A model generated the notes under the pieces. That model ran no database searches. It was not told the origin of the DNA and saw only the letters and a list, made by a program, of their open reading frames with translations. From the sequence record PV029745.1: a DNA stretch of 64,000 bases. One strand, given 5' to 3'. Position 1 is the first letter of the stretch. Every line of letters begins with the position of its first letter. A program made the translations under genes and the position numbers. This document shows, one piece after another, positions 2,526 through 8,384 of this stretch.

Positions 2526-3122
2526 ATGAGTAAGTTTAGTGAGCTGCCGTTTAATTTGATGGATACAATACACCATCCAAAACCAACTCCTGAAGATGAA
2601 AAACGGCTCTCTGAAGCCCTTGATAAAATATTCCCCCATAATCCAAAATTGGAGCACAATCAAATGACCGCACTGTCCCCGAAAGAACAACTGGACCAAG
2701 CTGTAGAAGCTTCTGCTGTAGCAGCACAACAACTCATTAAAGAAGATGGCTGGGCCATTCTTCGCGAATTGTATCGCACTACAGCTGCTGCTCTTAATGC
2801 TACTTCCATTGTTATCATTCCGGCGCTGGAGCGTCGTGAAGAAATTCTGAGTAAACTCAGTGATCCTGAAGGTTTCTCTAAAGATCTGCAAAACTGCATG
2901 TCTGATATTGAACAGATGATCAGTGCTCTGGAAGCTCTTAGTATTCTTCACGTAAACAAAACTGGTACACCTGATCTGGCTGATCTCGATCAAATCGGTA
3001 AGCTGACTTTGGGTTACGCAAATCTCCAACATAAAGTAGAAACAGCTGTTCAACCACTGCTGATGGGTCTCATTGCTAAGATGCAAGAAGCTGGTGTTGA
3101 TACTGTTTCCTTCGTGAAATAA
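2526..3122 (+). CDS. Hypothetical helical protein
   Basis: 198 aa, AGGAG RBS, first gene of a + strand operon. Confidence 0.7.
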   Translation: MSKFSELPFNLMDTIHHPKPTPEDEKRLSEALDKIFPHNPKLEHNQMTALSPKEQLDQAVEASAVAAQQLIKEDGWAILRELYRTTAAALNATSIVIIPALERREEILSKLSDPEGFSKDLQNCMSDIEQMISALEALSILHVNKTGTPDLADLDQIGKLTLGYANLQHKVETAVQPLLMGLIAKMQEAGVDTVSFVK

Positions 3123-3133
3123 GGTAATACAAA

Positions 3134-4735
3134 ATGCAAGAGCTTGATATGGATAAAGAAGACAATTATCCTGCTGAGGGTAATTGGGAACAGCAAGCTG
3201 ATGCAGAAGTAGAACAGGGGCCCACGGGTCCCACTCTACCGGACGCACCTGCGGAAGAAGTATCTTCTTCGCCTGCTGTTGAACTACCTCCTCTGGTAAT
3301 TGACCAGAAACCAGTTAACTTCACTGAGACACGTTCTTGTTCTAGTGAAGCTATTCCTGGTATGACCTCTTTGATGAGTTTCATTCTAGAAAACCCCAAG
3401 ACCTTTAACCAGGTATTGGAACGTCACTCGGCGCTATTGAATGGAATGCACCAAGGTGATCTCACTACTACTAGCAGTGACCGAGATTGGTTGATTTCTC
3501 TAGTAGCTGGTATGAACCATACTAACCTTGACCCCACTCCTATCGGTGGGACGGAACGTGAAGGTTCTGTATGGCAACAAGGTATTACTGGTCATGATAA
3601 CGGTAACCTTATTCGACCAGGCCGCCCTTCTCAAAAGATCGATCGTAATAAACGACACAGTAAAGAAGAACTGTTGGCATACCTCTCCAAGAAATCTGGT
3701 CTTGGTGCGACATACGAAACGTTTATGCCTCGTTCGGGTATCTGGCTTCGCCTGCGTGCTCCGACACTTACTGAAGTAGTCGCATTGCAAACAGAAATGC
3801 AGCAGATCAAGCTGCGGCTGGGAATGCAAACCAAAGGCATGTCGTTCTCTAACGCTGGTTCCGTAATGATGAACGCGATGACTGACCTGGCTCTGTCTTG
3901 TGTTATTGCATCGAACAAGTCCTTCATTACTCCAAGTGACCTGGAACATGAACTATCGATCTTTGATGAAGCTATCCTGCATCATGCCCTAGCTTCTACA
4001 ATGTACATTGATGGATTCAACTACGACGTTCCATGTATTGCAGACCCGGACAACTGTACGGCTCGTATCACTGCAAAACTTAACATGTCGTCTATCGTTT
4101 GGTTTGACAACACTGTATTCAGTAATGATCAGCGTAAATTTATCGCTAAGAAATTTGCACCTGCTACGGATGAAGACTTCAAAGCTTACCGTGAAGGTTT
4201 CGGTATTGGCGGTAAGAAAGTATTCTGGTTTGGTGATATTGGTGTTCGTCTTGCTATCCCGACTATCGCTCAACGTAAGATGGCTGCTTCTCAGTGGTCT
4301 CAGACATTGATCGAAATGTCTCAAGGTACATTTAACGAACCGCCACATGGTGTTCAACGTTCAGCGTACATTGATAAACTGAGTAAAGCTACTATCGCCA
4401 TGCAGTATGCTCATTGGGTAGATGGTATCTATGAAAAGGACGACGATGTAGAAGACTTCGAAGATCAACTGCTTTCCGACGATCAGGAAATCATTAGTGA
4501 TTATCTGGCGAACACTCTGAGTGATCCGCAGTACGCGGAGCAGTTCTTTGATACCGTACATGAGTATACTAACTCTTGCGTACTGGCTGTGGTAGCTCTT
4601 CCATCGCATAACTGCAAAGAATGTAAAGGTCCTCAGGGCCAAGCATTCAACGAACGTTTCCCGCACCTTGTACCGCTAGACATGATGGCAATATTTTTCA
4701 CGTTGGCGGGCCAGAAAGCCAAGCACCTGGAGTAA
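3134..4735 (+). CDS. Putative tail/baseplate-hub assembly chaperone (T4 gp26/gp51- or gpG-like); phiKZ gp77-like by synteny
   Basis: 533 aa; FMPRSGIWLRLRAPTLTE resembles the T4 gp26/gp51 N-terminal motif; Cys pairs CIADPDNC and CKEC. Confidence 0.5.
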   Translation: MQELDMDKEDNYPAEGNWEQQADAEVEQGPTGPTLPDAPAEEVSSSPAVELPPLVIDQKPVNFTETRSCSSEAIPGMTSLMSFILENPKTFNQVLERHSALLNGMHQGDLTTTSSDRDWLISLVAGMNHTNLDPTPIGGTEREGSVWQQGITGHDNGNLIRPGRPSQKIDRNKRHSKEELLAYLSKKSGLGATYETFMPRSGIWLRLRAPTLTEVVALQTEMQQIKLRLGMQTKGMSFSNAGSVMMNAMTDLALSCVIASNKSFITPSDLEHELSIFDEAILHHALASTMYIDGFNYDVPCIADPDNCTARITAKLNMSSIVWFDNTVFSNDQRKFIAKKFAPATDEDFKAYREGFGIGGKKVFWFGDIGVRLAIPTIAQRKMAASQWSQTLIEMSQGTFNEPPHGVQRSAYIDKLSKATIAMQYAHWVDGIYEKDDDVEDFEDQLLSDDQEIISDYLANTLSDPQYAEQFFDTVHEYTNSCVLAVVALPSHNCKECKGPQGQAFNERFPHLVPLDMMAIFFTLAGQKAKHLE

Positions 4736-4773
4736 TCAACGAGGACCCCCGGCATAGTCGTCTAACAATTAAT

Positions 4774-5196
4774 TTGGAGGACGACAACGGGCACGTTACA
4801 ATGAACTCTTTCGGTCGCAAGACTGTTAATGGTAAGAGTGCATTCGATGAACTCGTGCGAACGCTAGATGCCGTAAGGCCAGCTATTGCCGAAATGTTGA
4901 CCAGGAAGGCCTACCATAAAGACTACGGTATTTTCGATCATGATTCACCAGAGGCTGATCCTTTAGATCTGGTTAGAATGCATCCTAAGGAAAACGTCGT
5001 AGAAGGTGGACCTGAAAGAACTTGGATACGGAAGTTTGTCAATTACAAGATCAATGACATTTATGGTTTATCTTTACTAGAGTTCTTTGAACTACCCTTT
5101 AATGATTGTTTGTTCATGATTGAACTTGCAGAGTCGAAGGCTATTCAAAGTACATCGCAAGCTAGACAAATCGAGAAAGATCTTGGATTAAAATAA
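4774..5196 (+). CDS. Putative gpT-like chaperone extension; frame is open from 4627 and may be reached by a -1 frameshift
   Basis: No convincing RBS for TTG4774 or ATG4801; C-terminal YGLSLLEFFELP resembles GT/gp51 C-terminal motifs. Confidence 0.5.
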   Translation: MEDDNGHVTMNSFGRKTVNGKSAFDELVRTLDAVRPAIAEMLTRKAYHKDYGIFDHDSPEADPLDLVRMHPKENVVEGGPERTWIRKFVNYKINDIYGLSLLEFFELPFNDCLFMIELAESKAIQSTSQARQIEKDLGLK

Positions 5197-5210
5197 AAAA
5201 AATAAAGCAT

Positions 5211-5234
5211 AGCTCCTACCCGAAGGTAGGAGCT
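5211..5234. terminator. Bidirectional intrinsic terminator
   Basis: AGCTCCTACC-CGAA-GGTAGGAGCT between convergent genes; A-run on the left, TTATGCCG on the right. Confidence 0.85.
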
Positions 5235-5244
5235 TTATGCCGTC

Positions 5245-5484
5245 TTACACTTGTGCTTCAATCATCATGAAAAGACCACCCAAGAAGAGAGTGATCAGCG
5301 CTACGATAGCAGCTCCCCATATGAGAGCAGTGCAAATCATATTAATGCGGTCGAGCATGATGATATCTTTCTTGGGTAAACGAGTTCGACGAACATCATC
5401 GTTATCTTTTACCAGTTTTGCTACGAACAGGGACCCAGCGATAATCGAAATAGAGATCCACCAGATCAGCATGATGGTTTCCAT
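5245..5484 (-). CDS. Small membrane protein (2 TM)
   Basis: 79 aa, two long hydrophobic stretches, GGAG RBS. Confidence 0.7.
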   Translation of the reverse strand: METIMLIWWISISIIAGSLFVAKLVKDNDDVRRTRLPKKDIIMLDRINMICTALIWGAAIVALITLFLGGLFMMIEAQV

Positions 5485-6849: not shown

Positions 6850-8384
6850 TTAGTGCATGGCTATCCGTCTGAGTACCATTGAAAGAGTTTTACCGGCGAA
6901 ATGCTCACTTTTATTCCGAGCATATCTCACGTGGTGCGGTATGTTTTCACACACTAGGTAGGTCAACCTAGGTACCACATCTTGGAAGTCTTTCAGTTTA
7001 CGGAGACGACCCAGAATTTGAATGTTATCTTTCTTGGAATCGGTAGCTTGTAACAATACTACCTCACGAAGATTAGGGATGTCTACACCTGTACCAGATG
7101 ACTTAATAGTGGACACCGTAATGTCGTTCTTAAGTAACTGTTCATAACTGCAACCTGAGACATGTCCGTTAACCACAAGGTCAGGGAACTTAGTCTTTAG
7201 ATATTTAACCAGTTTTTCAATAAAGGCGACCGTTGCACAAAGGAGGAGTAGTTTCTGACCAGGTAACCGATCTTTCACATACACGCCCTCAGCAATACGA
7301 CCGACCATCCTGAAATAGTCATCCATCCGTTTAGGATCTTTCATCATTACCGTTTCGTAACGCGCATGGTTATACGTATTCTTAAACGGTGTAAGATAAT
7401 CCTTCGGTTTGATCTTTGGTTCAGTGTAGAGTAGCCCCATGCAGTTGATGTAGACATCGTAGTTGGGCAGGCGACACATGGTCTCTGCTGGCAACATCTT
7501 GTCAATCATCTTCGTCACGTAGGCGTTCCCTGTGTAGGGAGTAGCCGACAAATAGATCTGCTTATTAATGTTAGAGTAAATATCGATACGGAAGGTTAGT
7601 CCTGGATCTTCTTGAATCTCGTCGTTAATTTGCAGTCCTGCTTGTATTGCTTCGTGGAACCGGGGTGGAGGTACATTGTATCCGAGCTCATGGAGTCGGT
7701 TACCATACTTCTCAAAGTTATCTAGATATGCCCGGTAGGTAGTAGAAGAGATTACAATAACGTCAATCCCTTCAAGATCGTTTTCGACGCCGCGATCTAT
7801 TAGTTTTTGGAGTTCTGCGGAACCCGAGATGGTAATGTATCTCTGGGCAATGTCCTTGTAAGTGTTCTGAAGAGCCTCAATCCAAATACCAAAATACTTG
7901 GGAGGAACCATCACAACACATCTTACCCCCATCGAAGCCAAGGACGCTAGGCTCGTGAGGGTTTTCCCTTTCCCGTTTGCAAGTCTACCCGTGCAGAATG
8001 TAACCAATCACGCAAAATATCTTCACGGATGATTTCCTGATAATCCCGGAGTACGTATTTCTCGTACATTTCGTAAACAGCAGTTGCTGCTTTAGGGACA
8101 GGGATATCCTCAATCTCGACTCGTTCTCTTGGGATACCTTTGTTCTCCAGATAACCGATCAGGTCTTCTAGTGAATTTCGGTGGATATAAGTCTCTGATA
8201 GATCTTCGAAACAACCATAGTACTTTTTCTTGAGTTCCATGATGATTCGATTACCAGGGATCTTCTTAGGTTCTTTCAAAGAAAGCCCTTCAAGAAACCC
8301 CTGCATCTTAGCGAACGTTTCCCGAGTATACCCAGATAGTCGGACACCATGCGTATAGCGCTCAGCCTTGAGTATCGGTAGCAT
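6850..8384 (-). CDS. SF2 (UvsW/DEAD-like) helicase, phiKZ gp75-like, split into two frames at Walker A
   Basis: ORF 7947-8384 ends LRDYQ...DLQTGKGK; ORF 6850-8007 continues GKGKTLT and carries motif II (NDEIQ), motif III (SAT) and motif VI (QILGRLRK). Confidence 0.85.

Follow-up and report, generated by a model that had tools for sequence, protein, structure and literature searches.

In a 64,000-nt stretch of sequence record PV029745.1 (the window; positions are counted from its first letter), the plus-strand gene for a 533-residue homolog of phiKZ gp77 (positions 3134–4735) most likely ends in a programmed −1 ribosomal frameshift at a short T-run, so that the protein would come in a 533-residue form and in one of about 687 residues. 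At 4693–4699 (plus strand), the shift site A TTT TTC stands in the phase of the 0 frame and covers the phenylalanine codons F521 and F522, which are invariant or nearly so across the gp77 family. According to the mechanism that we propose, the majority of ribosomes would stop at 4733–4735 and yield the 533-residue protein, and a fraction would slip back by one base on the T-run. By analogy with the established simultaneous-slippage model, the tRNA-Phe on TTC would re-pair with TTT one base back, and the preceding tRNA-Phe would re-pair with two of three bases: the heptamer of the window is imperfect at its first position, such that re-pairing would be perfect in the A site and 2 of 3 in the P site. 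The slipped ribosomes would then read the −1 frame through to 5194–5196. The shifted product would thus consist of the first 522 residues of the gp77 homolog, a short flexible linker and a helical domain, linker and domain together making up an extension of 165 residues.

An earlier note on this DNA had proposed that a −1 shift at ATA TTT TTC, at the end of the 533-residue gene, joins it to the open reading frame (ORF) behind it. These codons are indeed found at 4691–4699, and the proposal is supported by a T-run that is kept in relatives, by the overlap of the two frames and by a downstream ORF that is devoid of a start of its own, as laid out in the following.

The T-run and the −1 frame are conserved in the gp77 family

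By nucleotide identity, the window belongs to a phiKZ-like Pseudomonas jumbo phage of the PA1C/PS119XW group. Bases 3000–5300 are 100% identical to Pseudomonas phage phiHQ, whose record is classified under Chimalliviridae, 99.7–99.8% identical to PA1C, PS119XW, BRkr, phiLBG22 and HHBS36_1, and 82.6% identical to HPP-Temi; these seven are jumbo phages of about 300 kb. The ORF at 3134–4735, which ends in TAA and matches phrog_4585 (E 1e-156), is homologous to phiKZ gp77, 201phi2-1 gp136, PhiPA3 gp074 and Goslar gp81. Homologs were found by tblastn in 216 phage records, with hosts in Pseudomonas, Erwinia, Salmonella, Serratia, Ralstonia, Vibrio, Klebsiella, Xanthomonas and E. coli, and the gene counts among the core genes of the Chimalliviridae, the nucleus-forming phages. 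The gp77 homolog and the downstream ORF are both labelled ‘hypothetical protein’ in every record inspected, and a join or slippage annotation was present in none of them.

The layout was followed across 77 loci of the window’s family, drawn from 13 annotated relatives, Goslar and 65 IMG/VR loci, and across five more distant isolates (a Salmonella Seoulvirus, a Vibrio phage, Erwinia phage Asesino, Halocynthia phage JM-2012 and a Klebsiella phage). A run of 5–9 T at the invariant Phe-Phe pair, 10–46 codons ahead of the stop, and a downstream ORF in the −1 frame were found in all of the loci (77/77 and 5/5, hence 82/82). From the T-run onwards, the −1 frame is open for 149–181 codons in 82/82 loci, with 150–181 in the 77/77, compared to a median of 11 for the +1 frame as control. 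Between T-run and 0-frame stop, it is open in 64/64 distinct loci, the +1 frame in 31/64. As background, −1 stretches of equal length are open at 0.33 of the positions elsewhere in the same genes; in a single genome, an open −1 stretch of 36 codons is unremarkable, since roughly every third position elsewhere would offer one. Across the relatives, the layout is not a matter of chance. The closest −1 stop upstream often lies just 4–6 codons ahead of the T-run, and the constraint on the −1 frame begins at the T-run and not at the 0-frame stop. Both the T-run and the overlap, whose conservation in gp77 homologs the earlier note had suggested as a check, are kept in 82/82 loci. As the layout persists in all of these related loci, it has the look of a genuine recoding site that annotation has missed, in a gene belonging to the core of the nucleus-forming phages.

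The same numbers bear on a trivial explanation, namely that there is truly one in-frame ORF and that the length of the homopolymer was miscalled in the assemblies. Homopolymer runs are error-prone on some sequencing platforms. However, the 82 loci were obtained independently, from isolates and metagenomes, in different laboratories and sequencing eras, and show the same −1 relation at run lengths from 5 to 9. No natural in-frame fusion of the two ORFs appears among the 77 loci and 319 database relatives, and conservation extends to the 0-frame tail behind the run. An artefact of this kind is thus extremely improbable. Long database matches (613–674 aa) were considered as candidate fusions and rejected; they are extended at the N-terminus instead.

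In the 0-frame tail behind the T-run, T523 is nearly invariant and L524 invariant. The unshifted product therefore seems to matter as well, and both products appear to be selected; presumably, both isoforms are needed.

With regard to the site itself, the heptamer reads T TTT TTT or T TTT TTC in 53 of the 77 loci and A/G TTT TTT or A/G TTT TTC in 24, the latter all from the Pseudomonas-phage part of the family and including the window. The family thus carries a slippery heptamer of the X XXY YYZ type in 0-frame phase. The T-run is selected at the level of codons, beyond the conservation of Phe-Phe. In 63/64 distinct loci, TTT is the first of the two Phe codons, and the single exception has a TTT TTC pair one codon earlier, whereas TTT accounts for 331 of the 1031 remaining Phe codons in those genes (32%). 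The C-terminal Phe-Phe pair of T4 gp26 is coded TTC TTT, without a run.

The −1 extension lacks a conserved start and appears to be coding from the T-run

The frame of ORF 4774–5196 is open from 4627 (behind a TAA at 4624–4626), lies at −1 relative to the 533-residue gene and overlaps the latter by 109 nt, as the earlier note had described. Its observation that this ORF has no usable start or ribosome-binding site holds as well: TTG4774 is not preceded by a Shine-Dalgarno (SD)-like motif, the GGAGG at 4776–4780 sits 20 nt from ATG4801, and no SD-like motif occurs within 5–13 nt of either codon. The adjacent genes mostly bear AGGA- or GGAG-type motifs 5–10 nt ahead of their ATG.

If read from the shift site, the −1 extension (4699–5196, plus strand) comprises 165 codons and a TAA in its own frame and forms a mainly helical domain (phrog_12109) in an AlphaFold2 (AF2) model. 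The model has a predicted local distance difference test score (pLDDT) of 89.4; residues 1–10 are disordered (pLDDT <50), and residues 21–40, which precede the annotated Met, reach 82–91. In GenBank, only 4801–5196 (plus strand) is annotated, as a coding sequence (CDS) for a 131-aa ‘hypothetical protein’ listed as ‘similar to PHIKZ076.4’. This CDS is most likely a truncated call of the extension. In an alignment of the 64 distinct −1 products, each in its own frame, the conserved domain starts at G31-H32-V33 of the window’s extension; of the relatives, 83% have the identical residue at H32 and 94% a residue of the same class at V33. The Met of ATG4801, by comparison, is common to just 19%, and the G-H-V motif lies upstream of it. 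In line with this, the phrog_12109 profile begins 13 residues before that Met. The motif is held by the segment from the 0-frame stop to the annotated ATG (4735–4800, plus strand), which is, judged by its substitution pattern and the alignment, coding in the −1 frame.

Across the relatives, 43 of the 64 distinct loci have no ATG, GTG or TTG at all between T-run and G-H-V motif, and of the other 21, which have a candidate start, only one shows an SD-like tetramer at a usable distance. The start-free −1 stretch amounts to 85 codons in phiKZ, to 68–101 in RAY-like phages and to 151 of 154 codons in one metagenomic locus. Among the start-less loci are L034 and L072, which have the window’s kind of imperfect heptamer (G TTT TTC) and runs of 5 T. 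A conserved independent start of the downstream ORF, which the earlier note had named as a finding that would speak against a shift, was accordingly not seen.

The 319 representative database relatives of the extension are all short (84–175 aa), and their N-termini are ragged, most simply because gene callers face a −1 ORF that generally has no start of its own. The phiKZ protein gp76.4 (L004, 3102–3563) is annotated with 80 aa from an internal ATG, the homologous open frame being about 165 codons long; the annotation of Phabio gp120 is truncated in the same manner.

Substitutions point in the same direction. Between the window and HPP-Temi, there are none in the 36-nt overlap, whereas the 99 nt ahead of it carry 12 and the 66 nt behind it 7; an overlap that is free of substitutions next to flanks with 11–12% is what double coding predicts. 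This dual-coding segment (4699–4734, plus strand) encodes the last 11 residues of the 533-residue protein in the 0 frame and the linker, poorly conserved and of low confidence in the model, in the −1 frame. Over 4735–4800, the substitutions between the two phages are distributed 1/0/6 over the first, second and third codon positions of the −1 frame, and the 38 nt ahead of TTG4774 contain synonymous third-position changes only. In the start-less stretch of relatives, the corresponding counts are 12/6/40 for L066 versus L069 (over 249 nt), 9/9/29 for L064 versus L066, 10/2/16 for L034 versus L072 and 2/3/13 for L062 versus L065. Judged from these patterns, the start-less part of the −1 frame evolves under coding selection. 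The family thus exhibits what is generally expected of a −1 site: a −1 ORF that is open from the site, is under coding selection and has no conserved start.

These data also speak to the possibility that the window’s lineage makes two separate proteins, in which case the downstream ORF would be translated from TTG4774 or ATG4801 and the open −1 frame upstream would be an ancestral relic. Both codons exist, the GenBank annotators choose ATG4801, TTG4774 lies just ahead of the conserved G-H-V motif, and some canonical start precedes this motif in 21/64 relatives. Neither codon, however, has an SD-like motif at a usable distance, and the Met is poorly conserved. Against HPP-Temi, the 38 nt ahead of TTG4774 still show synonymous changes only and the overlap none, the T-run with its TTT codon is retained, and 43/64 relatives are unable to initiate before the conserved domain. 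We therefore regard two separate proteins as unlikely.

RNA elements and the nature of the shift

Several observations weigh against a programmed ribosomal shift at this site. The heptamer of the window carries A in place of T at its first position, and the run is of just 5 T. Over the 75 nt behind the site, folding is no stronger than in shuffled sequences (z = +1.2), 91 nt give a z of −1.8, which is not significant, RNAalifold returned no conserved pair after the site for 16 sequences of the window’s clade, and an SD-like element upstream of the shift site is missing in the window. TTG4774 lies 5 codons before the conserved G-H-V motif in the window’s lineage, and a weakly initiated free domain from this codon could be an additional route there. 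Many relatives have 7–9 T, where transcriptional slippage could result in the same protein.

Given the negative folding results at the site, a hairpin or pseudoknot that the earlier note had drawn behind it is not supported as a structure, and the efficiency of the shift in this phage is not predictable. The letters are present (TTGGC at 4703–4707 and GCCAA at 4718–4722 for the stem, CCAG at 4712–4715 and CTGG at 4727–4730 for the loop pairing), but they are not paired in the minimum-free-energy fold. A scan against Rfam revealed no frameshift element. On average, the 75-nt segments behind the site reach a fold z-score of −0.68, and control segments one of −0.41. Clade-specific hairpins of 8–10 bp, starting 7–10 nt past the heptamer, are found in five IMG/VR loci (L046, L050, L057, L058 and L062) and in the RAY-like loci L064, L066 and L069. 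In the IMG/VR clade, the 0-frame stop codon is located within the 3′ arm, and compensatory changes occur at three pairs. These hairpins, which are absent from the window’s clade, are possible local stimulators of frameshifting. Many phage frameshift sites function without a stimulator. As no stimulatory element is conserved in the window’s clade, the efficiency of the shift may be modest.

The extended protein could also arise at the level of the transcript. In that case, the phage or host RNA polymerase would stutter on the T-run and place one extra U in some of the mRNAs. Besides the runs of 7–9 T, the lack of a universal downstream stimulatory RNA structure would fit transcriptional slippage, and so would the fact that these phages have their own unusual multisubunit RNA polymerases, with subunit genes nearby. 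The window, HPP-Temi and the Noxifer-like clade have 5 T only, though, and many others have 6. Runs of 5–6 T are shorter than those known for appreciable polymerase stuttering. Moreover, start-less −1 ORFs also occur with T5 runs (L034 and L072). The phase of the run always suits a ribosomal shift, but it would in any case be set by the Phe-Phe motif. Transcriptional slippage is a reasonable alternative at runs of 7–9 T and unlikely at the 5 T of the window; overall it is improbable, and the shift is presumably ribosomal rather than transcriptional.

The gp77 protein may be a distant relative of T4 gp26 and gp51

The 533-residue protein and the extension were searched and folded as separate pieces. 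For neither of them did Pfam, NCBIfam and PDB, searched by phmmer and by profile, return an informative sequence match, and PHROGs gave only two families that are devoid of a functional assignment. The AF2 model of the 533-residue protein, built with 52 relatives, has a pLDDT of 84.5 and a predicted template modelling score of 0.83, with residues 1–46 being disordered. A Foldseek search of this model against the PDB matched no solved structure (best E 0.9). Against BFVD, members of its own family came first (E down to 2e-30), followed by proteins that are about 250 residues long and bear the names ‘Baseplate hub subunit’ (Bacillus phage SP-15 and Aeromonas phage phiA8-29) or ‘Baseplate hub assembly protein, bacteriophage T4-like’. 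These baseplate-hub matches, which compare predicted with predicted structures, have E-values of 3e-5 to 5e-4, a probability of 1.00 and a template modelling score on the target of 0.53–0.62.

T4 gp26 and gp51 are listed as hub assembly chaperones (PMC3004832, table 2), and the corresponding NCBI family is named ‘gp26 family baseplate hub assembly chaperone’. The two T4 genes (L081, 10803–12229) are divergently transcribed neighbours, and their products are paralogs with 25% identity. The gp77 and gp26 families have two Cys pairs and a C-terminal Phe-Phe pair in common, in the same order (C301, C308, C494, C497, F521 and F522 as conserved residues of the gp77 family; C82, C84, C187, C190, F204 and F205 of the gp26 family). 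The likeness to T4 gp26/gp51 seen by the earlier note is in part reflected in these residues and in the fold matches. Sequence profiles do not bear it out: T4 gp26 and gp51 match PF12322 (E 9e-64 and 4e-52) and phrog_150, whereas PF12322 is not matched by the window protein or by 51 relatives. Similarly, an hhalign comparison of the gp77 family with an alignment of the gp26 family was not significant (E 0.2, probability 0.3%), with the two being colinear and with the first Cys pair and the G-D-I..P strand aligned, and comparisons with T4 gp26 and T4 gp51 singly were not significant, either.

On the basis of the models, the core of the gp77 protein (about residues 190–533) is probably a remote, enlarged relative of gp26/gp51. 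That the gp77 protein as such is a very divergent, enlarged relative of these baseplate-hub assembly chaperones is a possibility that we put forward tentatively. Against this assignment stands that none of the sequence and fold searches in Pfam, PHROG, NCBIfam and PDB, nor hhalign, yielded anything significant for a function, and that the similarity is one of predicted structures only. For the extension, BFVD returned uncharacterised members of the jumbo-phage family only. The GLSLLEFFELP tail of the extension, which the earlier note had taken as T4-like, is not borne out by a comparison of the extension with the gp26-family profile (hhalign probability 0.4%).

There are weak hints that the gp77 protein is absent from the virion. 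In the record of 201phi2-1, detection by virion mass spectrometry is noted for gp138 and gp139, not for gp135 and gp136, and gp81 and gp82 of Goslar go unmentioned in the text of the paper on the virion structure of that phage. If the protein were gp26/gp51-like, it would be a non-virion assembly factor, and the extra domain of the long isoform would recruit a second partner, a logic like that of lambda G/GT without homology.

The earlier note had suggested a G/GT-type chaperone pair far from the tail genes. In its strict form, this would be a true membership in the tail-assembly-chaperone family of lambda G/GT and P2 E/E+E′, with the gene having moved away from the tail genes. The recoding logic is shared, as a −1 shift would take place near the end of the upstream ORF and the downstream ORF is without its own start; the gp77 protein appears to be non-virion; and a sub-domain of about 120 residues has weak fold matches to proteins named as tail assembly chaperones. 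These matches are not significant (E 1.0–2.0, probability 0.2–0.5), and those that are significant are of the T4 gp26/gp51 type. Neither Pfam, PHROG nor NCBIfam returned a tail-chaperone match, and the protein has 533 residues versus roughly 100–150, about four times the size. Its neighbours are head, RNA-polymerase and helicase genes; a position between a major tail or tube gene and a tape-measure gene was not encountered. We thus consider it quite unlikely that gp77 belongs to this family, and the G/GT label does not hold up.

Comparison with known two-isoform systems

The −1 frameshift that gives lambda gpG/gpGT and P2 gpE/gpE+E′ is described as conserved in long-tailed phages in the passages of PMC9024508 that cite Xu, Hendrix and Duda (2004). 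As in these systems, the proposed −1 shift of the gp77 gene lies a few codons before the upstream stop, the downstream ORF is start-less, and two isoforms would have a common N-terminal part. As in lambda G/GT, too, the gene is of morphogenesis type and its product apparently non-virion, and in many cases a bare slippery run, lacking a strong stimulator, makes up the site. In contrast, there is no detectable sequence relation and no significant fold relation to lambda G/GT, gp77 is about four times larger, its gene is not located between the tube and tape-measure genes, and slippage would take place on a pure T-run, at a conserved Phe-Phe pair.

With T4 gp26/gp26′/gp51, the gp77 core shares the predicted fold, the two Cys pairs, the G-D-I..P strand motif and the C-terminal Phe-Phe pair in the same order. 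Two products are made from one gene in T4 gene 26 as well; however, the second T4 product arises by internal initiation and not by frameshifting. Also unlike gp26/gp51, gp77 has about 190 additional N-terminal residues and insertions, the profiles are unconnected, and the 165-residue extension has no counterpart there.

In bacterial dnaX, which encodes tau and gamma, −1 slippage of host ribosomes on a homopolymeric heptamer gives two isoforms in a fixed ratio. The mechanism proposed here resembles dnaX in that two isoforms would be produced from one gene by −1 slippage. In contrast to the shifted dnaX product, which is shorter, that of gp77 would be longer. Furthermore, dnaX has an upstream SD-like element and a downstream hairpin, neither of which is conserved in the window’s clade.

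Our literature search, which left most subscription journals outside its reach, found no report of this shift site, of frameshifting in the family or of a function of PHIKZ077. Papers that mention a ‘gp77’ were rejected as references to this protein, since they follow the numbering of other phages. As a broader and more speculative picture, it is conceivable that an obligatory −1 shift on a bare U-run is indispensable to all nucleus-forming jumbo phages (Chimalliviridae) and to a few relatives outside them, as the source of the long isoform of a core, gp26-like baseplate or tail-hub assembly factor. The two-isoform chaperone logic of lambda G/GT would then have been invented a second time, independently and in another protein family, and two decades of phiKZ annotation would have overlooked it. 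In this species, a second −1 shift may serve to decode the helicase gene described below.

The gp77 family is core to much-studied phages, including phiKZ, PhiPA3, 201phi2-1, Goslar, PCH45, RAY and the Seoulvirus Salmonella phages, in which the two ORFs are annotated, in every record inspected, as unrelated hypothetical proteins, the second often being truncated. Recognition of the frameshift would correct the proteome of a whole phage family, and existing proteomic data can be searched for the predicted protein of about 77 kDa. It would also provide a first functional lead, in hub or tail assembly, for this core gene, and suggest that two-isoform expression of tail-assembly factors is wider than the G/GT family. 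For the study of U-run frameshifting on bacterial ribosomes, the relatives offer a natural series from T5 to T9, with and without a downstream hairpin.

Gene neighbourhood and a possible second recoding site

The 533-residue gene is surrounded by homologs of gp78, of gp79 (head) and gp80 (virion RNA polymerase), by small ORFs, and by homologs of gp75 (helicase) and gp74 (RNA polymerase). The gp78 homolog (2526–3122), directly upstream, has an annotated start that varies between records: PA1C and HPP-Temi use ATG2526 (198 aa, with AGGAG 6 nt upstream), and phiHQ uses ATG2664 (152 aa). It overlaps a small minus-strand ORF that is annotated by phiHQ only. Downstream, a terminator-like, G+C-rich hairpin of 10 bp (5211–5234, no strand assigned) is positioned between the extension ORF and a convergent minus-strand gene at 5245–5484. 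This hairpin probably marks the end of a gp78–gp77–extension transcription unit and probably acts in both directions.

The helicase gene, a homolog of phiKZ gp75 on the minus strand (6850–8384), is split into two reading frames, the second piece being in the −1 frame of the first. The gene spans 1535 nt in the window, compared to a single ORF of 1536 nt (511 aa) in HPP-Temi. The two-piece form, annotated as two CDSs, is common to all seven relatives with at least 99% identity and is therefore a real trait of viable phages rather than a sequencing error. The double-open overlap, in the P-loop region, contains an X XXY YYZ heptamer in phase, and a second −1 recoding site of the window may lie here.

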